DNA of 33,873 bases from Bugula neritina. Lineage: Eukaryota; Animalia; Bryozoa. The position numbers were made by a program, and so were the translations under genes. Below the pieces are notes generated by a model. It was not told the DNA's origin and ran no database searches. It worked only from the letters and a program-made list of their open reading frames with translations. Location: contig CAXIUT010000024.1 of the NCBI GenBank assembly GCA_964035545.1, positions 1 through 33,873 on the forward strand, read 5' to 3'. Within the stretch, counting starts at the first letter, position 1. Each line of letters starts with the position of its first letter. This document shows, in pieces, positions 96 through 33,786 of this stretch.

Positions 96-124
96 TTAAA
101 TATCTCATAAAGAAATAAATCATG

Positions 125-929
125 TCATTCTTTCTTGTATCTTGATAAATAGTCTACAATAACTTTATTAATACCCATTATTTCACGAGCTGACCATCTT
201 TTATTCGCATCTTTTACCATTGCTTTTCTCATTACTACTTCCAATTACTTATCGCAATATCCATATACTATTTCTTTGCTTGTTGCATTTTCCCAATACT
301 CAAATTTAGTTTTACCAAAAAAAGGAGATTAACTGAAGATCAGCTGATAGATACATACTCCTAGAGCATAGATGTCTACTTTTTCTGTAAAGGGCCTAAA
401 AAAACCATAAATTATACTTTTTCTCAATAATTTAAGGAGCCATGTAGGCAGGACTGCCAGCAAATGGTTGTGAATCATGATTTATCATCCATTTCCAAGT
501 AGAAAGACCAAAATCAATCAATTTTATTTGATTATTGCTTATCATAATATTTTGCAATTTAACATCTCGATGTATGATCCCTCTTTAGTGCAAATAGTCC
601 AAAGCTGAACATATTTGTACCACAATTTCCTTCAATTTGGTCATATTGACTCTATTTTTCAAGTAAGTAAGGTTCTATCCTTGACAATATTCCATTTGCA
701 GTTCATATCCTTGAGTTTTAGGATTGAATTAACCATATTTGTAGCTTACTATGTTTGGATGCTGACATATACTGAGTATTGATGTTTAGTTGAGCATGTA
801 GTAATAGCTATTTCTATTTTCCAGTCGATCTGAGTAAGTGTGAAGTACTTTTTTCGTTGCTATTTGACTAGAAGATTAAGGATTGATGACTACTTTAGAG
901 AAGTTACCTTGACCTACTTCGTTTTGCAT
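125..929 (-). CDS. Ser/Thr protein kinase (~253 aa)
   Basis: With TAR=Glu: GQGNFSKV, HPNIV, HRDVKLQN, DFG, YMAPE (E=TAA), KVDIYALG. Introns 396-417 (22 nt) and 154-174 (21 nt); spliced length is a multiple of 3; TGA lies 30 nt from the telomere. Confidence 0.92.
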
Positions 930-1404
930 TTTATTGATAATTGATATGATCTTCCAAATAATGGAACCATATCAATTCTCATTTTATTAATTATCAATTT
1001 TAGATTTTTGACAAATATAAAAAAATCATATTTATCTATAACTTGACTCCTCATGAAACTTAAGCCATTTATAATTATCCATTTTGCAACCCCTAACTTA
1101 AATCTGCCAATGTTTTCCCTCTTTTTCTTCTAATCATAAGCATCAAAACAGCTGAAACTTAATCCCAATATTCCAACCAAATTTAACACATAATAAACCA
1201 CATCACCATCTGGTAAGACAGTAATCATCAAATCATGGTTAATGAAAGCCAATTCGACAAATAATGGAAATAAGCATAACTTTAGATTAATCTTTTTAAA
1301 TATTTTTCTTTGTAATTATTTATACTTGATAGATAGATTATTTTTTATTTTCTTAGAATCTTGAATAAAATATATCTGCTTCCCAAAAGATTAATTTTAT
1401 TAAA

Positions 1405-2219
1405 ATGTCATCAACCACTTATTCCCACCAAAAAGACGAACATTTTCTTATCCCCTGTCCTAAAGGCTATAAATGCATCTGCACATTATGCCCATGCGGT
1501 ACTTCTCTCTTACTAAGGTCATCATCTCTGCCCGCGTACCCATGTACCAACCGATTTCCAAACATCATATGCCAAAAACTATCCACAATACACCATCATT
1601 CCAGTCAATACGCCTCAAAAAGTACAACATAACGAAAGACACTATAATCCTTAGGTGCTGAAATCAAATTATCAACAAAATTTTGTTCCACTAGATGTAG
1701 AGAAGAAAGAGTCAACAGGGTAGGCGGGACTTATAGCATCGAGATTGTCAAATTTAGGAGTATTTTAAGATATATTTTAGAAAGAAGTATTGAAATCTGA
1801 ACCTTTTTTATGCTAATACAGCCTATCATGATACCTACAAACCTTTTACTGTTGAACAAATAGAACAATAAGCAGGTAGTCGTGTCATTTCTGATCCAAT
1901 TCAACGTCCTCGACTTAAATTCTAAGGCGAATCATCATATAAATCTCAATTTCATCAAGTCTAAATGCCAAGAATCTAACGTTATAAACAGCCGTAGTAT
2001 AAAAATCAAGTACCATTTCAAGGAAGTTCGAGTTATAAGCAAGATTTTCCAACTTTTAATGTTAAACAACCTTTAGTTTTTTCTAATTCAAATCAAAGAA
2101 CACCTTTGAGACAAGTTCCATTTGAAGGCAGCTCGACGTATAAGAACAACTATGGAACTTTCAAGGTGATGTCAGAAGAGGAAAAAAGAAATTATTTTGG
2201 AGATAAACTACAAGTATGA
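1405..2219 (+). CDS. SAXO/FAM154-like stabilizer of axonemal microtubules
   Basis: N-terminal CICTLCPCGHHLC is restored by a 19-nt intron (1499-1517); repeated Mn-like units FEGESSYK, FQGSSSYK, FEGSSTYK; TGA at 2217. Confidence 0.85.
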
Positions 2220-2437
2220 GAGTTGATTTTTATTATATGTTTTATACTAGTAATATTAAAACACATTATAATAAAAAATAACTAACGACTAGCTTTCAAT
2301 ATTATGAAAGAATAAATTTCAACTCTTCTTCCTTCCATAAATAGATATTTACCTGTTCTGTTGATTTATGTGATCTTTAATACTATAAGTATGCTCCTGC
2401 GTCCATATATTTTTTAAAAAACACATTTGGAGTGTCA

Positions 2438-3144
2438 ATGGATAACCTACTTCCAACCTTCTAGCCCTACAAATAAAAGATCCCAGAGTTCATAATCAAA
2501 CTCTATCACATTCTTGAAGTATCTCCTCTTATAACAAAGCAATAGCAATACAGTGACTATCTGACATGGCACGGCCCAACCGAAATTCTCATAAAACAGC
2601 CAAAAAAACTCTAAGACAAAGTTCTCCCACATTTCTTCCGACACAAACATCTATCATCCTTTATCAGACAGCTAAACATGTACAAATTCAACAAGGTGGT
2701 GAAATTGGTAAAAGAGCGTAACCACATGTACTTCAAAAACCAATTTTTCAAGAAAGGCGATATGTATTCTTGATTTCATGCAGCAAGGAGCTAACTAAAA
2801 TCAAACGGAATAACAAGAAGTCAAGAAATGCGACTGCTTCACATTCTTAGTCAGATAATATAAGTATTGAGTAGAAGTTGGAGAAAAATAATCATTTGAG
2901 TGATTATAAAAATTATGTCAAAAATACTGTTTAAGAAATTGTGCATTCTTTGAGGAAATTGGAAGGTAGTTATCCGGAATTAAAAGAGGAGTTGACTGTG
3001 TCGTTAGGGAAGTGTAATTAGTTGATGGAAGTGCAACAGTAACAAGAAATTCATTCTGCAATTAATTTATCTTAGTCAGAAGTTGGTAAAAATCAAATGA
3101 GTGACAGATTCATGCCGTCTTTTCCGAGCAATTTTAACTTCTGA
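2438..3144 (+). CDS. HSF-type DNA-binding domain protein
   Basis: PEFIIKLYHILE...LPHFFRHKHLSSFIRQLNMYKFNKV followed by a coiled coil. Introns 2519-2539 (21 nt) and 2764-2783 (20 nt). Confidence 0.92.
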
Positions 3145-3281
3145 TTCATTTATCACTATATAACCATCAAAATAATCAAATAAAATATAAGAACAATTTT
3201 TTCTTTATTATTAAATCTATTGTTAAATTTCTTTTATCTTTGTTCAAATATTTAGATCAATATCTCACAAATAATTTTTAA

Positions 3282-3631: not shown

Positions 3632-3727
3632 GAAGATTATTCTTATCAAAAACATAAATACAAAGAATGCAGTATAAATCATTTAAAATAAAAAATAACA
3701 AACAAGCCATTAAAAATTCTAACAATT

Positions 3728-4057: not shown

Positions 4058-4100
4058 TGTCTATATCATTTATTTACTGAATATATGGCTGAATGAGAAG

Positions 4101-4951
4101 TCACTGAATGTTGATGTTGCTTCTTGAACGAGAAATAGTTACATGCAGCCGAACATAACGACGTATAGGATGATATTTCCAACACCTGAGGGTAAGATTT
4201 TGGGGAGTAATATGTATGATTGTTGCTTATATTGCTACCAACCTTACTTGAAACGATATGAAGTTTCGTCTTTGAGGTAGATGTTCAGTGCAAAAAAGAG
4301 ACAGGCTAGGCAGTGGACGATGAAGAATCCGAGTAAGTGGCCTGAACACATAACGAAAGAAGAGTATATCATGATTTCACCAAGATAATTTGGGTTTCTT
4401 GTGTATTTGAAAAATCCTGTGGAAATAAGTCCTAAATTAGAATGAATAAATACCTGGTTTCTTTTTTAGGGTGACATATTTTTGATAATCTGAACCCATC
4501 ATTAGCACTAATCCTCCCAGATAAACGGCAATGATGAAGATAATTCTTTATTTTGAGGGTTAGTTGATTCCATAGCCAGCGGCCAAAGGTACAGATATCA
4601 TCCAATATAGCCCAAGGAAGAAGATAACTCCAATTACTGAACCAATTGATGCTTTATTAGCGAATCTGGAGTCAGGAAAGGTGAGATCTTTAAAGACCCA
4701 AAAGTATCCATAAGTTCCATGGAGGAAAAGATACAAATACATGCCAGTTGAGTAGTTTTGATATGAATGCATGAGTAAGAGAACCCACAAGAATGTGAGA
4801 CCTTTAAAGGTATTGATGATATAGTTAAGTTTGATTATTTTAGGGCCCACTGAATGACATAATAAGTACAGAGATCGAAGAAGAGACAGTTTTGAAGAAC
4901 CACTAGATTTGAAACAAAAGGTGAAAGTTCTTTTGTTTTGGATTATGACAT
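4101..4951 (-). CDS. Steroid 5-alpha-reductase/DUF1295-like membrane protein
   Basis: LISTGFFKYTRNPNYLGEIMIY motif and several TM helices. Introns 4850-4869 and 4432-4453, plus a probable one at 4123-4142 (if unspliced, the stop is at 4049). Confidence 0.85.
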
Positions 4952-4995: not shown

Positions 4996-5286
4996 TCATA
5001 TTTTGAATATTTACCATTTATTCATAATACTTTCACTTTTATCTTGAATCTTACTAAAATATGTCTCTTCTCTTGATGATTTAGTCTGCAATTAGTACTT
5101 CTTCTTTTATTACTTTTATTTGTGGACTTTTTATTTATGCATTCTTAATGCTGCTTGTGCCGGTCTCCATTCTATATCTCTTTGTTATTGATTCAAAATT
5201 ATAAAGTTTTTGAAACAATTTAGCTGTTCTCTGTTGATATCCTAGTGATAGAGGTTCAAATTGTCTTCTTATGGATTTTTGTTCAT
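4996..5286 (-). CDS. Hypothetical protein (96 aa)
   Basis: Open ATG-to-TGA frame MNKNPEEDNLNLYHEDINREQ... that fills the space between two genes. Confidence 0.45.
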
Positions 5287-5331
5287 TAAAATAATATAAA
5301 AATATAAATAATATACAATATCAAAACCTAT

Positions 5332-5922
5332 TCAGGCTTCTATTAGAAGAGAACTTTTACTTTTGATAATTTCTAATATCGTTTATTTGAGAATCGATAT
5401 TTTTTCACTCTCTTCACCAGGTATATCAGTCCATAGTTACTCCTGAATTCGAGTTATTTTACTTAAAAGCTCTTGTTTCTTTTATTACAACTTTCCAATT
5501 ACTCCTTTTGTTCTTTTATCTTCTTTATTATCAACTTCCTAACTTTTAAATTTTTAAATTACTTCTTAAATTCTACTCTATCCTCGACTTTCTTTGACAC
5601 TTCTACTCCCTAAAACTCTTTTCATCATCATTCCTAACGCCAAATAATCTTTCTACTTTTTCTTTGCATATCTTTAAGCATCGAATCTTTTCCATCCTAA
5701 CTTCCCAAAACAACTCAATATGACTTTATAATTTTGCAACACTTCATACTCATTACCAGGTCTCAGATATACTTTCGATAGATCAACTATCTTGGGATGG
5801 TAATTATGCAATAACTACAAAAATATGTATCCAGAAGCTAGTTACTAACTCGATGATATAAAAAGATTTTTCTCTACTAGTTAAAGATTGAACCACTCGA
5901 CTAGTTGTACTTTGTTGTCCAT
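5332..5922 (-). CDS. Divergent EB1/RP-like calponin-homology protein
   Basis: QLVEWFN...EELASGYIFLELLHNYHPKIVDLSKV...NEYEVLQNYKVI matches the EB1-type CH domain; C-terminal coiled coil; 196 aa, intronless. Confidence 0.75.
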
Positions 5923-5983
5923 CTATAAATTTAAATATAGCTTTTATAAGATAATCAAAAGAGGCACATAAGTGATATAGAGA

Positions 5984-6259
5984 TCATATTGGATTCCAGG
6001 TAGAAGAACATAAAAGACAATTTTGATTCTTCTGACTATTGAACCATCGATCAAGGCAGTGTTTGTGGAATGAGTGTCCGCATTGACCTTTAGCTATATG
6101 GCATGCAATACTTGGATCACTGAGAAGGAGACAATGTGGACAAGTGCTGTCAAGAGACTATCTGCATATACTACAGGTAACTGAGACGGAATCAGATACC
6201 CAACTAGCGACTGCATTCCATTTGATGACTGAGAATACTGGTTTTGTTTCGATTTACAT
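5984..6259 (-). CDS. APC11/RBX1-family RING-H2 protein (91 aa)
   Basis: KWNAVASW...CSICR...CPHC...GQCGHSFHKHCLDRW...CLLC..W; the last zinc ligand is Cys, as in APC11. Confidence 0.88.
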
Positions 6260-6367
6260 TGAATTTTAACAAAGATTTTTAATTATTGATGGTGAGTAGA
6301 TTTGTGCATTTGTATCTAACTGAAATAGAAATGTATATTTTGATCTATAGTTAACAAATCAGTCAGT

Positions 6368-7243
6368 ATGAAGGGAAATTAGTTAGGATAAGATTTTTTT
6401 GATGGTTATTTTAAAAAAATGGCATAAGAAATGAGAGTAGATTATTAAGAAAATATTTCAAAGATAACTAGAACTAATCAGAAGTATATGTAGACTATTG
6501 GATACCTAAAAGATGTTATCAGACGACTTAGTGATAAATACAATCAGGTTTTATAGAGAAATAAGGAACTAGAATTAGAGATAAAAAAATACTATAAAAA
6601 TAATGGGATAGTAAATCATAATTAAAATCATAAGGAATCAAACAAATCTGAAGAGTATATCGTAAAGAAATTTAATTTACCTAAAACTAGTGTTAAAGAA
6701 CGTCCAAATTCTAGTTTTTTCGATCAATTTCCACCATATCCAACTCATAAACCAAAAAAGACTCGTTCGAAATGTCTAAATGACAGACAAGATCTTCATC
6801 TATAATATCGACTTATATCAACATTTGTTCAAAAGCATTTAGCTCCTCATCTACTTGAAGACAAACTAAAAAACTGTAAACTGCCTAAGACACCATTGGT
6901 AAACCTTTATCTTCGTTGGAGTCAGACACAAAATCATATATCAACACTCAAAAAGTTGAATATGATCGTTAAATGTCAAATAACTAATGAATTAAAAAAG
7001 ATTTTTCCGAATGTTGATCATAATGAGAACTATTTTAGAGGGTTGTTTTTCAAAAAAGAGCTGGGAGTCAATGAAAATCATAGTAAAATTAATTAAACTG
7101 TATCTAAACAGGAAATTAATAATTTTGGAGACAATGTTGATGAAGAGGAAGATATCTTCGAATTGGATGATATTAAATTAGAATATTAGGGCGGATGTGA
7201 TTAAAATGATAGTGATTTGTTTTAGGATTGGCCTAGTTAGTGA
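6368..7243 (+). CDS. Hypothetical coiled-coil protein (~291 aa)
   Basis: 876-nt TGA-free frame with an N-terminal coiled coil and an acidic tail; start uncertain. Confidence 0.6.
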
Positions 7244-7309: not shown

Positions 7310-8449
7310 TCAATGATATAGTTCCTGAACCAAGTCAAAAACTTCCTAAAATCTCCAAAACTCTTACAATCCAAACTGATTTCGACAAACTTCTCTCACA
7401 TCGCCATTGTGTTTCACTTATCTGTTCATAAACTTCTCCAAACCGATCAATTAACGATCGTTTTATCCCATAAAAGGCAATACAGGTATGCAGTTTTATG
7501 GGTGTTTGACAAAAGAAGCAGGATTAGAATCGATTAACACTGTATTGCGAAGATCTCTATTGAAGATCGAAATGTCTTTTGTTAGGATATTTTCAGTCAA
7601 AGAAGTGCATGTTTCATGACCAAAATATGCTGAAATCAATTGATTTTCTGGATCTATTTCTTGAATAATTTCTTGAAGTATGTTTTTGTTTAATCTACTT
7701 AAAACAATGATCTCAAAGTTCTTAGCTATATTTTTAAGAAAACTCAAAGCATAAGGTCTTAAACCAACAAATCCCTTCCCATTTGATAGTTAAATATCAT
7801 TTTTATTCTATTTCTGTTTTTTCCATTTTAACACCACTCCATCTAACTCCATCACTATTGTTTTACATTTTCTATATTTCTATTTCTTATCAATTTTTAT
7901 AACAGGTTGATCAATAATATTTGGATAAGTAACTAACATAGTCTTCTTCATCATCTCCATCACATTCCATAGATAATGACCAATTATTGATCTTTCATTC
8001 TTTTAGGCGAGGATAGATGAAGTGAAGTAACTTTTGTTTTTAGGAGTTGCCTTGATGTTTGAGTGGTCATCATCACATTCAACTTTATATAATGAGAAGC
8101 CACTCTATGAATAGTTGAAGATTTTTTGGCTAACACTGTGGTGGATAATAGGTTTTTTGTTCTTTTTGGGAGATTAGGACACTAAATTGTCATTTTTGGC
8201 ATCTTTTACTTTTTTCTATAGAATGGCCAGATAGTCAACAAGAGAAGCTTACATCGTGTTTCTTGGGTTTTTGATGACTTTGTTGAAAGAAAAAGGTGAA
8301 AGGCTTTAGAAGTATGATGGGTTATTGATTCTGAGAGTTAATGGAGAAGTTTAGTCCATAGTTAGAGAATAGCGGTTGCTTGATCTGGATAGAGTTCTTG
8401 TGGTGTCTAGGCTCTAAAGGTTAAGGTATTTTTTTGAAAGTTAGCTCAT
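7310..8449 (-). CDS. NIF/FCP1/SCP-type (HAD) phosphatase-domain protein with a degenerate motif I
   Basis: KTIVMELDGVV, LRPYALSFL, TKDISIFNRDLRNTVLIDSNP..F..HPENCIPV; 379 aa, intronless. Confidence 0.88.
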
Positions 8450-9117
8450 TTGATGGTGTTTTGTTTTAAATTTATAATTTCTGATCGATCAGGCAGTATT
8501 AAAAGAGTTAAAATTCCAGAATATTTCATGAAATTACTTCATTTTTCATTATCAACAATAAAATTATCAAAATGACATAAAATAAATAATACATAAAACT
8601 CCTATTGCTCTTCCAAACACTCTTTCCTCATTAAAATTCATATTAATTTTTGTTTAATAATATTTTTGTAAAAAAAACATGCATTAATCCTTTCAAAAAA
8701 TTGATAACTGAGCTTCTTGTTATGAATGATATTGTTTAGTTACTACTTGACTTTCAAGAAAAATATTTAGAAAAAGGTAAAACTACTTTATTTCTTTTGG
8801 AATAAAATCATTTGAATCTTATCATTCTCATTTTTCAAAATTCTTTTAAATCTTCTTTAAAAAATACTGTAAATATGTTCTTCTAAAGCATTAAATGATA
8901 ATAAAATTAATAAATTTTCTTTGTTTTTTTTTCATATACTTTAAATAATTTTTAAAGAATATTCAGCGTAAAATCAAACGATATTGAACAAAATAGCAAT
9001 CCAAAAGAATATCTAATTAATCAAAATATCACCCAATAATAGAATAAAACATATAGATAGTCTATATTAATTTTACTATCCCCAAATATAATTCAATAGA
9101 TAATTATAAAAATAAAC

Positions 9118-10550
9118 TCATTTATCATCTTTTTACTTGTCTTTATCTTTATCTTTGTTCAGACAACCCATGACTCCTCTCACAATCAAAAAAATACCTA
9201 CTATCACCACCAATATCACCATCAAAACCAATGGAATTTACTTCTAGTAATATTTATCAAAAAGAGGCAAATGGAAAACCTCTCTTATCTCAATAGCTGC
9301 AATATAACACTGCGAAGGATCAAAATATTGAGGAAAAGACCAAAGTGCCATGAAGCTAATCGAAGAAGAAGCCAGTAGCATCACATTACAGTTGAAAAGC
9401 AAGCTATTCATGTAGGTTTGATTGGGAACCATAGGGTGCAACTTGACTACATAAGGGATTCTGAACCCAAATATCAGGTATCCTTTCAGCAGACAGATTT
9501 GCATATAGATAACAAAGAGACCATAGAGAAGAGTGGCAATGAATTAGCCACCTCCACCAGCAAGATTGCTGAACCAACCATCCATGAAGCTGTAGAGAGG
9601 TTCACCATCAGGTTTTATGATATGTCCTAGCATCTGGAACAACCAGAAAATACTAATGATTGCTGCTAGTATGCCGAAAATGAGTGCTGCGATGAATTTG
9701 AGAGGATGTGTGCTGTCTCGATGCAAGTTACTATCCAATAGTTTATGTTAATCTTCTAACTAGTTTACCTTCTTTTTGTACATATCAATTGCTTTTTAGA
9801 ACTTTGATTATGTTTTCTTTTTGGCAAGCCAGTTGCCTTATACATTTTTTATTTGCTATCCTTGTTATTTTAGTTTTTCACCTTAAGTTATTAGTTCTGC
9901 ACTGAGGGTTTGAAGTTAGGTTTTCTTAGTGAAGCCTTATTATGTTGACATGGGTTTTGGTTTATTGAAAAAGAAAAAGATAAGATCTAAAGGCAAGAAC
10001 ACCATTCCGACTGCTCCATTGATAACTAGTACAAACCATCCAACAAAACTCAAAGATAGCATTACGTATAGCGATGAATGTATATATGATTCATCCTAAT
10101 CGATAGTAAATTTACCTAGCCAAATATAGCTGATAAATACAATAGCATTCCAGATACATGCTACGATGAATGCAAAAAGAACAGACCAAAAGATGCGACG
10201 AGGAATGGAATCATCAGGATCGGATTAGTAGAAGAAAATAGCTAAAGGATTGATGAAGCATATGAGGATGAAGATGATCGGATAGAGGATAAAGTATACG
10301 AGGTGGAAATTGCTTTAAGGATCAGCTCCTCCTACTCCTAGGTCGAGAGGGAGTAGCAATATTTGAGACCATGCAAGTGTTTGTGAGATGATGACGAGTA
10401 TTTTAGCGAACAAAGAGTTGCCAAAACCTTTTTATTATGCTAAATTGAGGTGGTAGTACGATGACAGTAGACACTGAAGAGATAGATGCTGACACAGATG
10501 ATGATAATCACTACCACAATGGGCACGATGATTTGAACTGCGTTTACCAT
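9118..10550 (-). CDS. LMBR1-like multi-pass membrane protein
   Basis: YCHPEEKGFGNSLFAKILV, LLLPLD, LHPMVPNQTYMNSLLFNC; intron 10440-10459 (20 nt); 470 aa. Confidence 0.88.
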
Positions 10551-10629
10551 ATCTATATTATTATGGATAGAAATTATAAGGTGATTTTTAAGAACAAGTA
10601 AGATTTTATTAACTTGATTAAATCAATTA

Positions 10630-13263: not shown

Positions 13264-13335
13264 CTCTTCGTTCGAATCAATTTGATTTATATTGAATTAT
13301 CACTGAATATAACTTTTGATTAATCATATGAATCA

Positions 13336-13414
13336 GGGGTTGGGGTTGGGGTTGGGGTTGGGGTTGGGGTTGGGGTTGGGGTTGGGTGGTTGGGGTTGGG
13401 GTTGGGGTTGGGTT
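13336..13414. repeat. Internal (GGGGTT)n telomeric tract
   Basis: About 13 repeats in right-end polarity, with one GGGTGGTT variant; unique sequence follows directly. Confidence 0.97.
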
Positions 13415-14107: not shown

Positions 14108-14177
14108 CAGTTTCAATTATTTACTTTTGAATTATAATTATCTTTATTTACTTTATGATAAGGTGATCAATGAATTA

Positions 14178-14818: not shown

Positions 14819-15032
14819 TTTTGTTTGTATTTTTTTGAATTATAAGAATTTGTACGTGGATTTTAATGAAAAGATGATAGAAATAGTAAGAAATATTATA
14901 TTTTTTTGAGGAGTATTTAATTTCAATTATGATTGTTAAAAATATTAGGCAACCACCTCTTAATCATTCTCAGTAATAAACTAACTGTTGAAAAATCGTC
15001 AAAATATATTTATTACGTGTAAATTAAAAGAT

Positions 15033-18450: not shown

Positions 18451-18508
18451 TAGTTCTGTTTGTTTGTAGAAATATAAATAAATATTTTAAGATAAGAAAC
18501 ATATTTCA

Positions 18509-20734: not shown

Positions 20735-20786
20735 GTTAGTCCATAATTCAAACAGTAAATCAAAAATGATAAATTATAAAAAAATA

Positions 20787-21489
20787 TCAGCAGCAAGGTT
20801 TGCACATACCACTTTAATTTTATCTAGACTTCTACTTCTATAAACTTATTGAATTACCAGGATATTTCTCACTACTTAGTGATTCTTATCCATGTTTCTC
20901 CCTCCAATCATAAATATCTATATTATTTATTATGTTACTTTGGATGAACTCGTTAAAAGTCTAACGAACGTTATGACCTGTCTTAGCACTAGTTTATTTG
21001 AATGTTAAATTGTACTATACGCAGAAGTCAACGATTTATTTTTATGTGACAGCTCGTTTCTTCTGTCCTGAATCGATTAGATCGCATTTGTTTGCTATTA
21101 TTATTTTGGGCATTTTGTCTTTTATTTGCTATCTTATCTGATCTAGCCATCCCTTCAGATCTTAGAATGATTTCCTCTAGGTGATGTCGAACATTATTAT
21201 CGCGCCGTGACTTTTACGGTAATATGATCGAGTAATAGACATGTACTGTTATGCGCCAGCTAAGTATAACTAGTAATACAGGTGTCCCAGATGTTGACGC
21301 GGATGTTATGTTGGCCAACGTTGAGGTTTACAGGTGCATATTCGACTCCAATAGTAGGAGTGAGGGATTTTTAGGATTGAGGGCGGTTGATGATGAAGTT
21401 AAGAAATGAGGTTTTGCCCACTTTGCAGTTGCCAATTAGAATGACTTGATTGAAAGATGGGTACCTCTGTAGATAAGGGGAGTTGTCAT
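20787..21489 (-). CDS. Divergent Rab-family GTPase (213 aa)
   Basis: GNCKVGKT, PTIGVEY, WDTSGAEQY, NKCD, ETSAK, C-terminal CKPCC. Introns 21445-21464, 21260-21279, 20918-20938. Confidence 0.9.
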
Positions 21490-23461: not shown

Positions 23462-24093
23462 ATGTCCCAGCCAATCCATCAAACCGACAGCGTCGTCGAC
23501 CTTGATGATGAACATGACCATCCTGCTCAACAACTCTAAACTCTTCGTTCAAATTCTCAAAAATCATTTCGTATCGCCACAACAATCGCTTTACTTTTAT
23601 CTTTTATTCTATTGCTTTATGTCTTTGGTACTATTTCACTAGTGAATGATGGTCTTTTCTATAGAAATGTGATAAAGAGTAAGTAGATGCTTCCTTTTTG
23701 GAGGCAAATAGGGTAGTAAGAATAAAATAAAAATGGGACTGCATTGATTTAGAAAGGAGAACATATAATTACCAGAGGGTAATTAGGACGGATGGGCTGG
23801 ACTATTCTTCATATGATGACTGGTAGTTTTCCAGATGAAATTGATGATTAATTAAAATAGAAATGGAATACTTTTCTACTTCTATTTGGACACTTCTATC
23901 CATGCAAACTCTGCTCTGGACATTTTCTCAAAATGATGAAATAAGTCTAACCTTTTAATGGTAACACCAAGAGATAACTCATGGTTTATGTTTGTTAATT
24001 ACATAATCGAGTCAATTAGAGACTAGGTAAACCGATTCATGACTGTAAATCTGTCAAGAAGAATGGAATACCTGTGGATGCAGTGAATCATGA
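23462..24093 (+). CDS. Erv2-like (Erv1/ALR family) FAD sulfhydryl oxidase
   Basis: TM anchor, ELGRMGWTILH, FYPCKLCSGHF, CELHNRVNERLGKP.HDC. The C-terminal EEWNTCGCSES-stop requires one missing base near 24056. Confidence 0.88.
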
Positions 24094-24131: not shown

Positions 24132-25600
24132 TCAGCGATTGGCCAAAGTGTCTAGTATTTTTTAATTTTGCTGAGATCTTGTCCAACATTTGATAGTCTT
24201 AACCATCTCGTGTCTCTATCTTGTTGTAACTTTTCTCAACTTCTATAGACCTTATTAACCTTATTTACTACTAGCCATCTTGCAAGCCTAATCAACATCT
24301 TTCCAGATCCGATCTCGAACTCTTGTCATGCTCATTTTAGGATCTTTTCTTTGCTCACTGAGATAGTTTCTGTATTTGGTTGATAGTGTCCTCAAAGGTG
24401 TCTTTTTGAGAGATTATTCACTAGTCATAGATGACTCTTGATGCTTGTTCTGTTTCTTTGGTAATCTACGCATATATTACATGTAAGAGTTACCAACTTG
24501 TTTGCTTTACTAAAAAGATAATCCTTAAAACTTTATTTTTATTTCATTTTCTAGTCCTCAGATGATCGAGTCCTTTTACCCTAGGAGCATGATTTTGTTT
24601 AACATTCTATGCATAATCTTTGGCTGCCTCAACTAATCCTACTCTTTGCTTATATTAACTTTCTATATCCTATTTCTTTTTTCTTTTCTCATTGGCAACC
24701 AAAGTATAATATTTAGATTTCTAAAAATTTAGTTTTTTCTCTTTATTTATTTAATCCAAATCTCTTTTCTTCGTTCTCTATCAGCTATTTGTTGAGCTTT
24801 GATTTCTTTGTATTTTTATTAATGTTCTCTAACTGCCTGAAGATCTACTTCTTTTCTTTTTAATCTTTATTCCATCATCATTATCTTATTCTCAAGTTCA
24901 GTTTTTTCTTGTTCTTTTTGTTTTTATTCCATCTTCTAAAACAACTTCTTTTTTGCTTTCAACTAAGTAATCTTCAATCTTTCTTCTTAATATTGTTTTT
25001 ATTTTTGTTTCTTAGTTTTTTATAGAAGTTGCAATTTATTCATAGCTTATTTTCTATGATTCTATGCCAACTATTTTCTATGCTTTTATTCTTATTTTAA
25101 CTATTATTATCTCATCGCTTGTAACCTCTGTTAATGTTCTTTAGTTTTATTTTTCAACTTCTGTTAGAATTCCTTTTGTTATTTTTTCAACTTTTTCAAC
25201 ATATTGATATCTTACTGAGTAAGTTCTGATTTATTTCTTAAATTAGGTGAAATAGATTTCTTCTAGATATCATAGACATTTCTTTTTATACTTAGTTATT
25301 TTTATTATTAAGTAAATTATCGTAATTTTTAGTTCATACGCTATTTTGATTGTTTTATCTGTTGGAGACGACTTGATAACAGTTTGCTATCGTCTTTTGG
25401 TAAGATAGTGAAAGGGACCTGAGTTTGATTAGAGTTACTTTGTTTTTTGATAGTTTAAGAGCTGAAGAATCTAGCTGATTTACCACTTTCTATTATACTC
25501 TGCGAAGAAAATAGACAAGTTTTTACTGTATGTTTTATGGCTATGGCTCAAGTGTAGGTTATGGTTAGATAGTTGCTATAATTTTATCTTTGGCTGGCAT
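24132..25600 (-). CDS. Coiled-coil hypothetical protein; frame broken by indels
   Basis: E/K/Q-rich heptads; 1-nt frame changes near 25445, 25261 and 24160; plausible end ISAKLKILDTLANR-stop. Confidence 0.55.
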
Positions 25601-25701: not shown

Positions 25702-27374
25702 TCAAGTTTGGAAGACTCCTTTCTTTTCTAACCCTCTATTCTTTTTTTTCAACTTGAATCCATGCAACAACTTCCATCTCTTCCTCGCTGATATCAACTT
25801 CAACCGATTTACATCTGTAGTTTATGGATTTTACTACTCCAAATCTACATGTCTTAACACTCTTTTAACTTTCTCTCGATACATTGGCTTATCTTCTACC
25901 TTTGGCTATGATTTCATCTTTTAGGAATAAACTGCTTTCAAACATTCTGGAACCAAATATTCTGGCACAAATGTTGGTATTTCTGTTTTGTTGTGATCGA
26001 TCTTCCTACGTAGACTGTTGACACTTTGCACAAGTATTTATTTTTATTTGTTTTGGTCCATCTCTTGAATTCTGGTGTCTTCAACAATTTCTTTTTGAAA
26101 TCTAACTGTCGATATAATTAGGCTCTGTGATTGGTTAAACTACTCCAAACATCACCGAATTCTGTACTTAAATGCTTCTATTTATTTTTTATTTATTGGC
26201 AATTCTTTGATAACTGTGTGTTCATATTGATTTTTCTCATATTTTGATCAATCCCTGTAATGTCTATATTTATTGCTATCTATTTTTCAAGAAAAGTCAT
26301 GATGAAAGGTTTTATTTTGAACGAATTAAGAATGGTATCATAATCATTATTAAGATGAACTAGACCAAGAGTGATGATAGAGGTCATGTTGACTAATTCG
26401 AACTGCTATCTCTTGTATTGTTTTTTGACTTGTTTTTTAAAGAGGTTAGTATCGATATCTTTCAATATTTGAGGAGTAGCCAACAAAACCGAAGTATTGC
26501 CGTTCATCCAAACCGACAGAATATAGAATTTTGAGGTGATAGGATCTTCATGGTTGTAGATACCTACTGATGGAATATGACATCTTTCCAAAAATAGTGC
26601 ATATCGGTATATCTATCTGATGTTTTCAACCAAAACAAGTATCTTAGGGTTGACTAGATTGAATTTAAGAGTGAGGTATAGACAGATAGGTATGGTGAGG
26701 GAGTCGCCAACTGAATAGAAGTGTGTGATTTGTTATTATTTTTATTTTTGTTATTATTATGGTTCATTTGGTGGTTAATATGTTATTTTTGATGTTTTTT
26801 TCATCCAATCCGTCTTGAATTTTTATATTTATTGGCCTCTGTTTATGCAGCTCAACTTATAGATGACTCTGGTTGATTTCAAACTGCCAGCTAGTAATTA
26901 CAGTATTTATCCATAGCCAAATCCAAATAGCAAATCTACTTCTGGATAAACTATTATCATTATTTTATCTTTTTATTTTTTCCATAAATTGTTGACTTGC
27001 AAAGGACTACCGATTAGCACCATCTTTCCTTAGACTTATCCTAGATCCTGCATGTAGAGATTGATGACTGCTGTTTAGAGACAACTTGACATGAAATGAT
27101 GGATTTGCTGGGATAGCTCTTTCGAGTGGCAGAGGACTACCATGATGCCCTTATTCTTAATTTGAATATTTCAGTAGAGAATGTAGGAGGAGAGCAGTAG
27201 TTTTGCCCTGAAGTTGGAGGTGCCAGTGATGATGAGGTTGTCGATGTTTTGAGTGGATTATAACATCTGTAGCTGGAAATCTGTTGGATGATGTAGTTGC
27301 AGGCGTGTGAGTCCTCGCAAGAGAAGAGGATAGTCTTGAAAGAGAGATGCAAGAGTTGTGGGTTAACTTTCCAT
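25702..27374 (-). CDS. DDX56/Dbp9-like DEAD-box protein, degenerate; frame broken by indels
   Basis: PTDFQ Q-motif, GKT, CHSKELSQQ, EVDLLFGFGY, YRYALFLE, EAFKYRI.DV, VPEYLVPE; several homopolymer indels. Confidence 0.72.
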
Positions 27375-27479
27375 TGTTGACCTATAAATATTATTTTAAT
27401 TAATTAGTATTTGATATCAGATAATACCATTATTCCAGAATTTTACAAAGAGATGACAAAGAATAAGAAAAGAAGCAAT

Positions 27480-28006
27480 ATCAAAGTTTGTTATATATAT
27501 AATTCAACCTCATACTTTTCCAATATTTCCAAAACCCGCTACAACTAATATCTCAAATATTCTGCCTAAATTTAACTGCCAGCTTCAAGTTGCAGTCGTC
27601 TCTCTTTGCCTATTATCACCAAACAACATCCAATATTTCTAATCTTACTTCCTCTTATGACATACTAGACCCCTTCTTTGACTATTTTTTCCATTTAAGG
27701 AATCTATATCCTTTTCTAGTCGTCTTTATCAGGTGATTTTCCAACAGAGATACCTGTCGTCGGAGGAGAGATAGACAAATTTATGATGAGGTTCTGTTGT
27801 GTTTTTATGAGTGTTTTATCATTAGGTATCCTTTTTTTTAAGTTAGATAGTATTTAGTGGATGTTTTAGGCTTCAGATGATTAATCGCTTATTCTTTTGA
27901 GAGTTACAGTTAGAGGAATGTTTTTTATGTTCTAGCGTACCTAGTTGAGGGTTTTGCTCAATAGATTACGTATTTTTGTGACTCTTAGGATTGTTTTAGG
28001 AGGCAT
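27480..28006 (-). CDS. Hypothetical protein, 3' end uncertain
   Basis: Long TGA-free frame from MPPKTILRVTK; no family recognised. Confidence 0.4.
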
Positions 28007-29849
28007 GTTTGTGTTGATAGTTGTGGTTTTAAACAGTTTGACTACAATTCAAAACTTTGTATGATAATATTATCAATCTAATAATTTTTTTATTACTTGT
28101 AAAAATATAAACTTTATGATATATTATCATTCTATTTTTCTGATTATGTATGATTTAAGAGTTTTCTCTGGCGTTTGGATTAGAACATTCGGTTGATTTA
28201 ATCGCAAAGAGTGAGATGATTAGCTAGGGATAGAATTTTGAATTAAAATGTTTGTTTTTCTATTCTTTTCTTGTTGACTAATTATGATTCATTTGATATT
28301 TGTACTTATTGAATGAATTCCCTACCTCTGTAACTTCTTATTGCATAATTTTTCTTTTCTTTATTACACTTATTATCATCTTCTTTGAACAATTTACTCA
28401 TCATTTCCAACCACTTCTCTTAACAGGTCGATTCTTATCTCTCCTCTGACAAACATTCTCAGCAATATGGTCTTAGTTTCACTGCTCTGTAATCTCTAAC
28501 TACCATTCTCTTATGATTTTCATTAAAATAAATAGGTAGTATTTAATTTCGACAGTATTTTTGGATTTGTTGCTAGATGGCAGTCATAACTTTATGGAAA
28601 ATGAGTTATAGCTTATATTTTAGCTGTGGGATATTGAAATCGGTTTGATGATAAATGTTGAAAGGATCTACCACATTTTTGAGAGATTTATGAGCGAGAA
28701 ATAAACGACAAAGTCTTTTTTCTTTCTATTAGTTCCAAATAAAAGATGATTTGTTTTATTATTATTTGATATTTTATTATTTTTTGTTTATTTTCTGGAT
28801 AGTCTGCATTATCCATCCATAGAGATCACATATTTAAGGTTCTTAAACAAATTATTGTTCCTATTTATAGACAAGATTAATAACTTTGCAATATGTCTAC
28901 CATCTCTTCTAACTTAATACTTTTTTGGCATTATAAAGCAACCAAAACAACTTTTCTCATTTATTCTTTTCCAATTCTAATAACATTTCTTCCATTTTGA
29001 TTTATCATTTCTTAGATCTTTCTGAATACAGTGATTGTAATCAATAAAAATATTTCTTGATTGCTAGCTTGAATATTTTAGAATCTGAGATAGGGATTCA
29101 TAGTTTAAAATTATAATTAACTTTCATTGATGATAGCTTTGGCAAGAAACTGCTCTTTTTGTAATCTAATTGAGTAGAAATAATCAGAAGTAAAAAATTA
29201 AGGTGAATGAGTTACTTTATTTAAAGGTTGATTGATTATGTTTATTATGTCTGATATATTCAATTATGGAATTATTTACTCGTCATTTGGAATTGATAGA
29301 TATTTTTTTGGGAAGTTGAAGTCAACAAATTAAATATTTTCAGACTGCATGTTTATTTTATCATAAATTAGTTTTGGTTTTGCCGATTATAAGCTTTAAA
29401 GGAGGTCAATAACAGACCTTTATTTGTTTATATTGTTGTTTTCACCTTGTTATACAATCTATATTTATTCATTCGCTTCCTTGTGATTGATTTTTTATTC
29501 ATTATCTGCCATAGATTAATTATTTCGATATTTCTATAAGAACTTGATAAATTTATCAGCATTTTTCAACATTTTCTTGCTAAAAAATATACTTTAATTA
29601 TCTTTTTCATTGCATCTCTCATTTCCAATAACATCTGTCTCGTTAATATTATTTTTAATTTTATTTATTCGCTCATATGCTAGTTATCCATGATTTAAGT
29701 ACTCGTTGATATTGGATTGATTGACTTTTCAAATAGAAATTCCACTTGATAGAAATCAACTCATTTAATATATAAGTTGACAAATGATGCAAAATGTAAA
29801 TATTTTTGAATAACCCTATTTCTATTATTATAAACAAATAGAAATAATC

Positions 29850-31900
29850 ATGGAAAACCTACCTTTAGTATGTTCCACTAATCACCCTCCAAAACTTATC
29901 CCCTCACCTCATCGTTCATACTCATTTAAAAGCAAAGCAAGTAGTTTGCCTCAAAGTCGATATCATGTAGAATAGCTAAGATTGGATTGATAGTAAATGG
30001 TTTATTATTGATCACTCTGGATACTAAAATTAAAATAGTGGATAAGAGAATTCTAAAATAGGTAAAAAAGATGGTTATAGATGTGGTAGAAGCTTTCGGG
30101 AAAGAAATGATATCAGTGGTATTGGATCGAGAATTGGTAGTCAACTTGGAATGAGAAAAAAAGGAGATCAACAGTATTTCAATATGAGAAAGAGAAAGGA
30201 GACTTAAATGAAGATATAAATCACATCTCCTCAGAAATAGATGTCTAAATGTTCAATGAATTCACCTAAAAAATCAATAAGTGGATCTCCTAAAAATGAT
30301 AAATAACATAATAAATCATATCTAGCATCTCTTTTAAAAGCAAAAGAAGGTCTTAAGAGAAAATTTAAGACTTAAAATACTTATAAAAAATCAAGAAATT
30401 CAGGAACAAAGATAGATAAAGGTTTCGGATCATCAAAAAAATTTGGTTCTAGATCTTCATTTAGAAAATACATGGGTAAAGATTTAATTTCAAATAAGAG
30501 TATTCTTTCTGAAATATCAAAGGCTTCATCAAAAGCAATCGATATTGTAGGTCCTGAAATGACAAAATTATTAAGTCCTGTTGAATTATAGATCCTAATT
30601 ATTTTATGAGACCCTTTATGAGTGATCCTTACGAAGACTTTCCTTAATGGAGACAATGGTAAGACAAATAAAATCAAAATTAAAAAGTAACAAACGATAG
30701 CAGTGATAAATATCAGCTCATGAGGAAGTTTTCATTACCAATGGAAATGGATTAAGGTAATTTTGATCATCTAAAGAAACAAAAATAAAATAATGAAGAA
30801 AAATTAAAGTAGAAAAGTAATCTTTAAAAATAGAAAGAGGAGAAAAACAAATAATAAAGTAAATAAGCAATAAATACAAAACAATAAAGTCTTCATTTAA
30901 AGTAGAAAACATAAAATAATAACTATCATTGTATTTTTTAACCATCTCCTTAAAAATCATAAAAATCCTCTTATCTCTAGTCTGCCTTCAATAGAACAGC
31001 TCACAATAACTCTTTATCATATCTATTAGCCTCATAATAAAAAATAAACATAATAAATATTCCAAATAGTCCTCAAACTTCATATTTCCCTTTATCGAAA
31101 AAGCAATCTCTGATTATTCCTAATCCTTCTCACAACAGTCTATATCACAACTAACCTTTAATCTAACTTCTAAACCTCATGTTAAAAGTTCAACCTAAAA
31201 TAATATAAAATTTGTTCGATATTCATGATACTTCATGTTACCGATGCATGTTATTCGAAAAAAGAAGAAGATAAATGATTAAAATGGACGGATTGTTTCC
31301 TTTTGATAGCAACTACTATCCTCTATTTGGCAATGTTTAGCAGTTTATCTGGTTTTCCCGTGTTAGTTAAAGCAATAGCAACTCTAAAAGGATCTTATAG
31401 TGAAGTATCGAAAGTCAATATTTACTAGATGTACTAAATGATAACAGGACATCAATTGGTATCGATTAAGTAAACAGTTAAACTCTAGAACTAACCAGTC
31501 AAATACTTATCGATGTTGAATAAAAAAGGGCTCAGACATTGGATAGTTTTATAATTGTTCAAGATGACTTAAATATTTTTAAATTAGATGAATTGGTCTA
31601 TCGTAAACCTCTATCTCAAATTAGATAATAAGAGTAGATTTCAAGTGTGAAGAGATCATTGCAATCATCATCGATTGGATCCAGAAAGATGAAGAGTTTG
31701 ACTGGTTTTCCCTCAAAATTAAAAAGCATGAAATATCTGTCTAAAGAGCCTATGATAATACGATTGGTAAGTTGATTGGAGTTAAAGGAAAGAGAAGTGT
31801 TCCTTTTGGATAGTTGCTAGGCTAAAGATATCAACTTTGGATGGCTACTGAAGTCAGTAGGTCGTAGATGAACAACTCTGAGAAGTGAAATAGTGAATTA
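29850..31900 (+). CDS. Hypothetical K/S-rich low-complexity protein(s); frames broken
   Basis: Long TGA-free segments (e.g. ~30070-30600, SPQKEMSKCSMNSPKKSISGSPK); boundaries approximate. Confidence 0.35.
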
Positions 31901-32879
31901 ATAAATAACTTTTTTGATGAGTTATATTTAAATAATCATTGTTTAATAAATATTTTCTCTTAACTCTTTTTCATGATTTTTGTTTTTAATAATTTTGTTC
32001 ACATTGTCAAATAACTCCAACTAAAAAACCTTCCTTGAAAAGATCAAACATTTACAATCAATTTTATTCAGATTATTGCAGCTATATAAACTATTGTTTT
32101 TATAATCCTTTTTAATCCTTTAAAGAAGTGCTGTAGTCAGTCGTCAGTTTTATAACCTTATTTATTACATGAAGCCAAATCTTACTTTATGCCATTAACC
32201 TCATTTTGCATTCAAAAAGTTAAGTCCAAATGTTTAAAAGCAGAGAAAAACTATGGACTAAAGGAATGCCCTAAAATCAAAGTTGGTTTTTATGACTTTC
32301 CACATCTTGAAGTATGGACGTAACCTTTGGTAAAGGCCTCTTTAAGCTATCTTAAAGGGCTTAAATCAAATTAAATTGCTATTAATTTGGTCTTATCTTT
32401 GGTCAGACCTGTCAGACTTTAGCTAATCGATATGGTAACTTCATGATCCAATTAAAACATGGTATTCATGACTCCATAAAACAATCTAAATATCTGGATC
32501 AATCTAACATCTTATAAGAGTAAGTTAAAAATATATCTTCTTCCTTCAAAAATGGGATAACAAACTATGGTCAGAAGTATGTGAGTTATTTGAGATTATG
32601 GTTCAAATGTGATTTTGGATAATTTGTTTATTCTTTATCATAGCTAGCAAAAAGTTGTTTAGGAGATGAGTTGGAAGAGATAAGGATTGACTTTTATGAA
32701 GAAAAATCAAGTTGGAAATGGAAGGAGTAGTGTTAATATATAGAATAGATAAATAAAGGAAGAAAAATATATTATAATATTAATCATATCAGATCCAATG
32801 AGAATATTAAAAGAATTAGATCTCCTTAAAATGCTTTGAGCTTAAAAAAAGAGTTCCTAGATTTTTGACAAATCGGTTT

Positions 32880-33240
32880 ACAAATAATGAAGATTAATAT
32901 CATCACCCTCAAAGTTAAATTTCAATAAAACAACAAAAGCTTCGTAGTTTTATCTTATTGACTAAAATCAAACCCAAAATTATCTTAGAGTACGACCAGA
33001 AATCACTCCTAAAATCTTCTAAACTCCAAAGAAGCAAACATTTAATCGCTCTCTAAGTCTAAATAATTATCAAGTATCTCGTACCACTGCTCGCAATCAC
33101 ATAGTTAAGATGATATTAGAGTATGATCGTGATCCTGATCATTTTGGAGGTAATAATATCATGCTTGATGAGCAGAGGCTAAAATAGATGGAACTTAGTA
33201 AGCTGAAAAAGCTGAAGGAGAGTCCTAAATAGTGTTGGTG
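32880..33240 (+). CDS. Hypothetical protein, 5' end unresolved
   Basis: Frame ...ETPKKQTFNRSLSL...KLKESPKECW ending in TGA at 33238. Confidence 0.35.
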
Positions 33241-33443
33241 AAGATTTAAATGACCTCTTTGTATCAAATTTTATTGAATAATAAAAAATAGATTTAGATA
33301 AAACCACTAAGAATTTAAAATGCTTCTAGAATGATCTTTTATCTTCACTTCAACTCCTTAATCCTAATACTATTAATCATCAATAAAACACTAATAGTCA
33401 CATTGATACTAACTGATAGATTGATAATAAGGTTGAGATCCTT

Positions 33444-33698
33444 TCAGCATCCTTTGATGTGCCATTTTTGTTGTTCAGCAACCCAGCAAATGCAAGGCCA
33501 GCAGTCTTTTTCCATTGAGACGAAGTATTTGAAGCATTCAAGATCCATGGGAACATCAGCTCCTTTTTCTCTGGCAGCTTTCTAGCAGACTGGGAAAGCT
33601 TTATTGATGTCATCAATGCATCTGACTTCGAGGTCATGGGGGCAATCAGCAGCAAGAGCCAAAGCGAGGATGGTAAGTAGGAGTAGTATCAACTTCAT
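33444..33698 (-). CDS. Small secreted cysteine-rich protein (84 aa, 8 Cys)
   Basis: MKLILLLLTILALALAA signal peptide followed by DCPHDLEVRCIDDINKAFPVCEKAAREKGADVPMDLECFKYFVSMEKDCWPCICWVAEQQKWHIKGC-stop; intronless, clean frame. Confidence 0.88.
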
Positions 33699-33786
33699 TT
33701 ATGGTAGATTTATATTATGGATAAATCATTGGTGATGATAGATTTATAATTGATAGGTAGGATATTATATTTAAAAAACAAATAAT

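Follow-up and report, generated by a model that had tools for sequence, protein, structure and literature searches.

A GC-skew gradient from C-biased gene starts to G-biased gene ends as the probable source of a sawtooth-like pattern on a ciliate macronuclear chromosome

The stretch of DNA analysed here (the window; 33,873 nt) is a chromosome of the small, multi-gene ciliate macronuclear type, with a telomere at each end. Genes were called ab initio with a self-trained periodic-Markov HMM, whose strand calls were 95% accurate in cross-validation, and the median length of the coding runs is about 0.9 kb. Pfam domains were found in eight of the ten pieces searched, and all seven domain-bearing pieces lying inside HMM coding runs (six runs) are on the strand called by the HMM. 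The features of the window are listed below, with GC skew at the left and right sides of coding runs and the source of each assignment in brackets.

1–95: left telomere, (C4A2)n (read directly)
5030–6185, − strand: RING-H2 finger coding run; + strand skew −0.08 left, +0.19 right (HMM; Pfam zf-rbx1 at 5987–6157, −)
6350–7214, + strand: coding run, G-rich throughout; +0.43 left, +0.47 right (HMM)
7361–8467, − strand: NIF phosphatase domain coding run; + strand skew −0.08 left, +0.51 right (Pfam NIF at 7499–7789, −)
9122–13278, − strand: two adjoining genes (LMBR1-like and MORN-repeat) merged by the HMM; + strand skew −0.29 left, +0.28 right
ORF 9121–10629, − strand: LMBR1-like gene (Pfam LMBR1 at 9247–9543, −)
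ORF 10633–13299, − strand: predicted MORN-repeat gene (sequence reading)
13336–13414: internal (G4T2)n array in an intergenic linker (read directly)
13415–13861, − strand: coding run with its stop codon directly against the internal telomere array; + strand skew −0.30 left, +0.07 right (HMM)
14189–14679, − strand: Rab/Ras GTPase gene; skew flat, −0.13 left, −0.11 right (Pfam Ras at 14466–14696, −, E 2e-28)
15164–17188, + strand: coding run; + strand skew +0.04 left, +0.18 right (HMM)
17375–18447, + strand: Kelch-repeat gene; skew −0.08 left, +0.14 right (Pfam Kelch at 17539–17811 and 18004–18276, +)
18566–21336, − strand: protein kinase coding run, possibly more than one gene; + strand skew −0.11 left, +0.11 right (Pfam Pkinase at 18756–18962, −)
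23482–24092, + strand: coding run with a C19/G4 window (23521–23580) at its 5′ end and a G17/C3 window (23701–23760) downstream (HMM)
24138–25491, − strand: coding run; + strand skew −0.20 left, +0.24 right (HMM)
25706–28043, − strand: coding run with the largest rise of the window; + strand skew −0.43 left, +0.45 right (HMM)
29850–31733, + strand: coding run from an ATG at 29850 (HMM, sequence reading)
33452–33708, − strand: small gene for a predicted secreted cysteine-rich protein, its 5′ end at the right telomere (sequence reading, HMM)
33787–33873: right telomere, (G4T2)n (read directly)

The initial annotation of this chromosome described a sawtooth in which blocks of the + strand begin C-rich and end G-rich whatever the direction of the gene. 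All seven of the 60-nt base counts on which it drew were reproduced exactly. These extreme windows are local patches, and some run contrary to the C-to-G rule. In the MORN-repeat gene, the + strand is G-rich at 11.2–12.4 kb and then C-rich at 12.4–13.0 kb, against the rule, and both patches track amino-acid composition. We take the 12.4–13.0 kb segment as putative MORN repeats; a Pfam search gave no confirmation of such repeats there. Part of the G-rich reading at 13.2–13.4 kb comes from the internal telomere array. The G21/C2 window at 20281–20340 lies some 100–150 nt from the 5′ end of ORF 18360–20429 (− strand), so the coding strand is C-rich at that position. Likewise, the coding strand of the small gene at the right telomere is C-rich at its 5′ end, making the + strand G-rich. 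The first 90 nt or so of the run at 29850–31733 are C-rich and encode a Ser/Pro-rich N-terminus (C21/G3 at 29881–29940), and the run is G-rich from about 30060. It is the sole apparent exception to a left-to-right rise on the + strand, because the start called by the HMM (29928) misses most of the C-rich start.

The variance of GC skew is 3.1 times the binomial expectation at 60 nt and 6.1 times at 200 nt. Within the window, 11 of the 12 coding runs of at least 500 nt, and 15 of 16 runs when all lengths are included, have a higher + strand skew at their right end than at their left; the rise is common to + and − genes, as first described. Polarity was tested on 143 kb of sequence of this ciliate, using a statistic that is invariant to reverse complementing. 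It was positive in 63 of 80 blocks of 1.5 kb (p ~4e-8), and stayed so in 39 of 54 blocks (p 4e-5) once DNA within 800 nt of a telomere array was set aside. AT-rich contigs of other ciliates carrying C4A2 telomeres (from metagenomes) gave 23:23, showing that a positive value is not built into the statistic. The polarity is modest, with a mean of about ±0.1.

The skew spectrum has only a broad hump at 0.4–1.3 kb, peaking near 1 kb (about gene size), and no sharp or regular period beyond it. A sawtooth shape was not recovered either, the third moment of the skew increments being about zero and the block sign test about 8:8. On the approach to an AT-rich dip the DNA is G-rich (+0.10 to +0.14), and beyond the dip it is C-rich (about −0.03); this polarity extends for about 250–300 nt. 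It is found at gene boundaries (115:70, p 8.5e-6), whereas at AT-rich dips within genes it is not significant (58:56), and the proposed resets within coding sequences were not confirmed. The densely spaced fixed sites that had been invoked thus correspond to gene boundaries and chromosome ends, and do not form a regular array.

Viewed along the coding strand, metagene profiles (33–52 genes from the 143 kb) start with a skew of −0.05 to −0.14 over the initial 200 nt, run at about +0.1 through the gene body, and reach +0.13 to +0.24 over the final 250 nt. Internal genes gave −0.04, +0.06 and +0.21 in successive zones from 5′ to 3′. The deviations at the two ends are similar in size (5′ about −0.10, 3′ about +0.15), and coding-strand skew rises in genes of both orientations (9:4 for + genes, 10:1 for − genes). 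On the coding strand, extreme C-rich windows are common from the 5′ part to mid-gene and almost missing from the last 20%. In the per-gene shuffle test of McLean and Tirosh with 100-nt ends, 12 of 41 genes (29%) rise significantly and none falls. Flanking DNA, where linkers contain little G or C, has a skew of +0.12 in the first 50 nt past the stop and about −0.03 over the 50 nt leading up to the start.

The bias is present at all three codon positions. At 4-fold degenerate sites the gradient persists (−0.49, −0.27 and −0.02 from 5′ to 3′), with the difference between last and first zones positive in 22 of 33 genes (22:11; paired test, p 0.004); at codon positions 1 and 2 combined, it is positive in 26 of 33 (p 0.002). 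Along the gene, C decreases and G increases at 4-fold sites while A and T stay flat, and AT skew is flat, positive and without polarity (0.16, 0.14 and 0.22 by zone). The change resembles an exchange between G and C that leaves GC content constant, and does not resemble C-to-T deamination. Amino-acid usage differs accordingly, with Ser, Thr, Tyr and His commoner at gene starts and Lys, Glu, Trp, Val and Ala commoner at gene ends. The initial claims that the skew shifts synonymous codon use and tracks amino-acid composition were therefore both upheld.

Superimposed on the gene gradient are local skew patches of either sign, about 150 nt long. The protein sequence and local synonymous codon choice each carry about half of the excess variance of these patches. 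Synonymous shuffling removes 50–60% of the excess block variance (z 7–19, so the effect exceeds codon-shuffled controls), and protein sequence alone retains around 40–50%. Much of the skew variance lies at codon positions 1 and 2, while 4-fold sites, corrected for codon family and next base, track the local skew (r ~0.2, slope 0.35–0.4), and the codon-choice component has an autocorrelation of its own of about 120 nt. These interior patches, which involve synonymous sites, are left unexplained by a model based on gene ends.

The blocks had been said to share the polarity of the telomeres, and this was confirmed at chromosome ends: the C4A2-bearing strand is C-rich 150–300 nt inward (skew about −0.2, or −0.22; 27 ends against 7), and the effect is about twice as strong beside real telomeres. 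The same polarity occurs to the right of internal G4T2 arrays (13:2). Such arrays are present on many contigs at about one per 50 kb (a rough count of telomere matches), compared with about one gene boundary per kb. Logan contigs break at the array at 13336–13414.

Composite GC skew at gene ends was reported in unicellular fungi by McLean and Tirosh in 2011, who held it to be absent elsewhere (PMC3315797), so a description of the pattern exists, where the initial annotation knew of none. It is a known type of pattern in a new taxon, and matches the fungal one feature by feature. In both, the coding strand is C-biased at the 5′ end of genes, G-biased at the 3′ end and intermediate between, there are three regimes with changes limited to gene ends, A and T are flat with a uniformly positive AT skew, and 4-fold sites as well as amino-acid usage are affected (e.g., Trp is commoner at 3′ ends). 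The share of individually significant genes is also alike, 29% here and 33% in C. albicans (PMC3315797). Fungal composite skew continues into promoters and 3′ UTRs (PMC3315797), an extension that may be weak in the flanks measured here. The present case differs in its host (a ciliate, whose stop codons are reassigned and whose macronuclear genome is fragmented), in the stronger effect beside telomeres, and in the interior patches of either sign.

A 2005 study found that C outnumbers G on the coding strand at transcript 5′ ends, ascribed this to transcription-linked mutation, possibly G-to-C transversion, and saw no significant excess of C among 11 protists (Tetrahymena, 0.04) (PMC555766). The 5′ excess seen here, relative to predicted gene starts, is alike, but that work concerned the 5′ side only and reported no 3′ G-bias. 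Among spirotrich ciliates, Oxytricha nanochromosomes have a base bias in the 50 nt or so next to the telomere, with a periodicity of about 10 bp (PMC3558436), and in Halteria nanochromosomes the coding strand has a GC skew at its 3′ end which, according to the authors, may not be transcription-related (PMC7858049). These too are macronuclear chromosomes with a complementary bias that is identical at both ends. Their bias lies no more than about 50 nt from the telomere of single-gene chromosomes, whereas that described here lies 150–300 nt inward, within coding sequence, on multi-gene chromosomes, and is seen at internal gene boundaries as well.

The sawtooth-like profile is probably a per-gene gradient of GC skew seen from one DNA strand. 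The coding strand is C-biased over about the first 200 nt, mildly G-biased in mid-gene and clearly G-biased over the last 250 nt. As such a gradient is invariant to reverse complementing, every gene, in either direction, rises from C to G on the + strand. Skew falls back at AT-rich intergenic linkers and chromosome ends, and the spacing of units is simply gene size (median coding run about 0.9 kb). The initial annotation had argued that independence of orientation rules out transcription alone. A constant skew does flip with gene orientation, but a 5′-to-3′ gradient does not, so a gene-anchored, transcription-linked cause is still allowed.

The same invariance means that the data also fit a process anchored at linkers or chromosome ends, and sequence symmetry alone cannot separate a gene-polar process from a strand-symmetric one of this kind. 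A strand-symmetric mutational process running outward from nucleosome-free linkers and chromosome ends, for which gene direction is irrelevant, is considered unlikely, though it is the likeliest of the alternatives. Candidates are end resection exposing a 3′-ending single strand at regular and alternative ends, or bidirectional transcription initiation from every linker; either would leave the strand with its 3′ end toward the linker depleted of C. The reverse-complement symmetry at all linkers, the similar size of the 5′ and 3′ deviations (as a symmetric process predicts) and the maximum inward of real telomeres, repeated beside internal G4T2 arrays, are consistent with this, and some linkers may be alternative chromosome ends given the internal arrays on many contigs. 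The arrays are, however, far sparser than gene boundaries, AT-rich dips within genes lack significant polarity, and the identical pattern occurs in fungi, without chromosome fragmentation (PMC3315797). It is a little less likely still that the polarity is written specifically at chromosome ends and alternative-end linkers, and not by transcription, with the fungal pattern a look-alike of different cause. An example would be repeated exposure of the 3′-ending single strand during end processing of fragmented, multi-isoform macronuclear chromosomes; if true, coding sequence, including its silent sites, would record where chromosomes end.

Asymmetric repair in nucleosomes predicts the observed sign of polarity (Mao et al. 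2020, PMC6961582): with faster repair on the 5′ side of nucleosomal DNA, C would be depleted on the 3′ side of each strand, and each positioned nucleosome would run from C to G and reset in linker DNA. The patch length of about 150 nt and a small bump at 210–220 nt in the GC content spectrum would suit such nucleosome-imposed polarity, yet it seems very improbable, as the skew spectrum has no component near 150–220 nt, there is no positive autocorrelation peak near 200 nt, polarity reaches 250–300 nt from linkers, and interior dips are non-polar. Protein composition or chance, i.e., Gly/Glu/Arg-rich against Pro/Ser/Thr/Gln-rich segments and low-complexity repeats with the DNA itself unbiased, would account for the variance at codon positions 1 and 2, for the part retained by protein sequence, and for extreme windows falling on putative MORN repeats and Ser/Thr/Pro-rich tracts. 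As the sole source it is just as improbable, being contradicted by the 4-fold sites, which follow both the gradient and the corrected local skew, by the synonymous shuffles, and by the separate autocorrelation of codon choice.

Densely spaced replication origins or termini, writing replication-type skew into each sub-kilobase unit, would likewise give a strand-symmetric pattern with breakpoints at AT-rich sites. Human N-domains show such a strand-symmetric, sawtooth-like profile with fixed breakpoints, on the megabase scale and with TA skew involved, and at bacterial origins and those of N-domains skew jumps upward. Here the skew drops from G to C across AT-rich sites, the opposite sign; units are about 1 kb; AT skew has no polarity; the effect is gone within about 250–300 nt and does not span the unit; and a 34-kb chromosome needs no dozens of origins. 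This origin of the pattern, offered in the initial annotation, is the least credible of all, and the match to the gene-end bias of yeasts means that the pattern is no evidence of closely spaced origins.

Composite gene-end GC skew of Candida-like strength in a ciliate extends the known range of this bias to a eukaryote that is very distant from fungi and has its genome organised differently, and so speaks for a general cause tied to transcription or chromatin. Macronuclear chromosomes that are small and multi-gene, with defined, perhaps alternative, ends, are a possible test bed on which a transcription-polar cause might be told from one anchored at linkers or ends, where fungal data could not do so. 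In this genome, the skew gradient is also a usable annotation cue for gene boundaries.

The window (33,873 bases, 31% GC) is a complete ciliate macronuclear chromosome, with (C4A2)n at its left end and (G4T2)n at its right end. TGA alone serves as the stop codon of this ciliate; under the standard code ORF content collapses, and it recovers when only TGA is read as stop. The assembly holding the window (as contig C33) amounts to 216 Mb, and its nine large contigs belong to another organism. Contigs C3–C7 are from a different organism than the ciliate, and their first 10 kb (L003–L007) open with (CCCCAAA)n arrays, which in C4–C7 are up to 10 kb long. The ciliate sample comprised 143 kb (the window, eight contig ends of 5–10 kb and sixteen pieces of 1.5–3 kb) and was small, giving 33–52 genes per test, with gene models predicted ab initio. 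None of the public RNA runs checked contains the DNA of the window. Public contigs aligned to the window were short and showed strain differences only, the telomere array being skipped as a repeat. Across positions 10500–16400, the chromosome is present in public runs of three studies with many single-base differences, mostly transitions, indicating that several ciliate strains were sampled.

The initial annotation described + strand blocks that start C-rich, end G-rich and reset, usually at AT-rich linkers. Its seven 60-nt hand counts were all exact on recount, and the variance of GC skew (referred to below as skew) exceeded the binomial expectation 3.1-fold at 60 nt and 6.1-fold at 200 nt. 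The skew is correlated over about 150 nt, and its autocorrelation dips weakly below zero at 200–300 nt. The sawtooth shape itself did not hold up: the third moment of skew increments, a test for a slow rise followed by an abrupt fall, was null, as was a block sign test. Nor do the blocks recur with a regular period, as the power spectrum is a broad hump between 0.4 and 1.3 kb, peaking near 1 kb with nothing sharp, and the autocorrelation is similar.

Polarity was measured by statistics that are invariant to reverse complementing, so gene models were not needed. Cross-correlating GC content with skew gave an antisymmetric part that was positive in 63 of 80 blocks of 1.5 kb (p ~ 4 × 10^−8), and AT-rich dips carried a skew of +0.10 to +0.14 on their left and about −0.03 on their right, reaching 250–300 nt. 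An effect confined to subtelomeres was ruled out, since polarity is still present once everything within 800 nt of a telomere array is set aside (39 of 54 blocks positive; dips 135:91). AT-rich contigs with C4A2 telomeres from other ciliates in metagenomes, which serve as a control and not as proof of absence in any named species, gave 23:23, showing that a positive value is not built into the statistic. Over-dispersion of skew was also lower in these contigs than here.

Genes were called with a three-periodic, second-order Markov model trained on long TGA-free ORFs, followed by a seven-state HMM segmentation. Strand accuracy of the Markov model was 95% on 300-nt windows in cross-validation. 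Two gene finders tried first, one scanning windows by codon log-odds and the other scoring ORFs with an X-drop, were dropped as too weak (KL 0.06 per codon; wrong strand at the right end). Pfam domains were found in eight of the ten pieces searched, namely Ras, protein kinase, Kelch (two pieces), RING-H2, NIF, PEMT/ICMT-like and LMBR1, the last being a weak match under Pfam's own cut-off. All seven domain-bearing pieces within HMM coding runs (six runs) had the domain on the strand assigned by the HMM. Individual features of the window are:

4247–4465, PEMT/ICMT-like piece (Pfam), in a stretch without an HMM call
10633–13299, − strand, MORN-repeat gene, so named from reading the sequence
13336–13414, internal array of (G4T2)n, about 80 nt long, with the 5′ end of the MORN-repeat gene on one side and the stop codon of the following − strand gene on the other
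33401–33708, − strand, small gene for a cysteine-rich protein with a signal peptide, starting about 80 nt or less from the right telomere

Coding runs of both orientations rise from C to G on the + strand, the right end lying above the left in 11 of the 12 runs of at least 500 nt and in 15 of 16 overall, much as the initial annotation had proposed. The single exception was a run whose HMM start skipped most of the C-rich 5′ end. Polarity at AT-rich dips on gene boundaries was 115:70 (p = 8.5 × 10^−6), whereas dips within genes gave 58:56, which is not significant, so that the resets reported inside CDSs find no support. The units of the pattern are genes, and skew drops at the intergenic linkers.

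In the average over genes, coding-strand skew lies between −0.05 and −0.14 across the first 200 nt, is about +0.1 in the gene body and reaches +0.13 to +0.24 across the final 250 nt. Both + genes (9:4) and − genes (10:1) show this rise, which occurs at all codon positions. The proposed effects on synonymous codons and on amino-acid composition were both recovered. Four-fold sites keep the skew (−0.49, −0.27 and −0.02 along the gene; paired test 22:11, p = 0.004), C falling from 18% to about 13% and G rising, with A and T unmoved. At two-fold sites, C/(C+T) is higher at gene starts and G/(A+G) at gene ends, and AT skew along genes is flat and positive. Toward the gene end, Ser, Thr, Tyr and His become rarer while Lys, Glu, Trp, Val and Ala become commoner. 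On the coding strand, windows of extreme C-richness are frequent from the 5′ part through the middle of genes and nearly missing from the last 20%.

Where ORFs are long and their frames secure, four-fold skew follows the skew at positions 1 and 2 (r ~ 0.2, slope 0.35–0.4, both corrected for codon family and next base), and does so within ORFs as well. CpG is depleted (odds ratio 0.48); a context artefact at four-fold sites, arising from codon family or CpG avoidance, was ruled out because the signal persists after this correction. The block structure also exceeds that of codon-shuffled controls, as synonymous shuffling within ORFs takes away 50–60% of the excess block variance (z 16–19). Wrong-frame ORF ends were ruled out as the cause by the same result in the cores of ORFs of at least 400 codons (z 7–8). 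Codon choice is autocorrelated in its own right over about 40 codons, a length scale equal to that of the protein component. The four-fold correlation, the loss on shuffling and this autocorrelation together show that a skew field exists at the DNA level, with a consistent sign at gene ends.

The blocks share the polarity of the telomeres, as first noted from the sequence. Inward from C4A2 ends lies a C-rich zone, with skew of −0.19 to −0.23 at 150–300 nt (27:7, 26:10 and 25:9 ends), which is back to zero by about 500 nt; AT skew inward from the same ends gave no signal. Real chromosome ends show the skew effect at about twice the strength of internal boundaries, and a C-rich zone is likewise found to the right of internal G4T2 arrays. 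Such arrays, of G type in every case, also occur in contigs that start with C4A2 (C10, C11, C14 and C15), and 30-mer telomere matches across the genome number 5412 of G type and 2848 of C type, about a twofold difference. A simple end-to-end join of chromosomes was rejected as their origin, since it would place G4T2 beside C4A2. Either an assembly effect or genuine telomere tracts inside chromosomes, serving as alternative ends, could account for the arrays. At the one in the window, public short contigs break off. At some internal sites of the pieces L023, L027 and L028 (from contigs C86, C133 and C190), a G4T2 array is followed by a spacer of about 200–300 nt and a C4A2 array, an arrangement that looks like two facing chromosome ends in one contig.

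It had been argued that orientation independence excludes transcription, but this does not follow. Reverse complementing maps s(x) to −s(L−x), so a constant skew flips sign and a rising gradient stays rising; a gradient that follows gene direction, C-rich at the 5′ end and G-rich at the 3′ end, thus has the same appearance on the + strand whichever way the gene points. Symmetry of the sequence does not by itself tell whether the cause follows gene polarity or is a strand-symmetric process anchored on linkers. What is observed is a skew anchored on genes, an exchange of G and C at constant GC content that extends to silent sites. The main rival is a strand-symmetric process working outward from linkers or chromosome ends whatever the gene direction, and it is kept in play by 5′ and 3′ deviations of equal size and opposite sign, by the stronger effect at telomeres and by the existence of internal telomere arrays. 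Replication origins, suggested previously, are unlikely, as the sign is wrong, AT skew lacks polarity and the effect reaches just 250 nt. A strand polarity about the nucleosome dyad, like that known for UV repair (PMC6961582), would have the right sign, but the skew spectrum has no component at nucleosome spacing. A small bump at periods near 210–220 nt in the power spectrum of GC content (143 kb; window and L010–L036), absent from the skew spectrum, could be a nucleosome-repeat signal in the DNA.

Although no description of the pattern was known to the initial annotation, McLean and Tirosh (2011; PMC3315797) reported the same composite skew in almost all unicellular fungi. There the coding strand is C-biased at the 5′ end, G-biased at the 3′ end and intermediate between, in three regimes that change at gene ends; A and T are flat with a uniformly positive AT skew, and both four-fold sites and amino-acid usage are affected. 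The ciliate matches this pattern in every feature that could be tested. Their per-gene shuffle test was significant for 33% of C. albicans genes and here for 12 of 41 genes (29%), while no gene was significant for a fall. Fujimori et al. (2005; PMC555766) reported C in excess of G at the TSSs of plants and fungi, and no such skew in 11 protists. Among ciliates, a GC skew has been noted for Halteria (PMC7858049) in the 3′ subtelomere of the coding strand, and its two chromosome ends show similar biases; Oxytricha (PMC3558436) has a subtelomeric bias of about 50 bp at both ends, and GC skew is mentioned at the +1 nucleosome of Paramecium (PMC13076228). A literature search found no account of the complete composite gradient for any ciliate.

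McLean and Tirosh argued against C-to-T deamination because GC skew was not mirrored by AT skew, and it is disfavoured here on the same grounds. Of the two causes they offer, one is C-avoidance tied to CTP supply (PMC3315797). Given the match with the fungal pattern, the explanation we favour is that mutation or repair in phase with transcription would be the source of the gradient in this ciliate.
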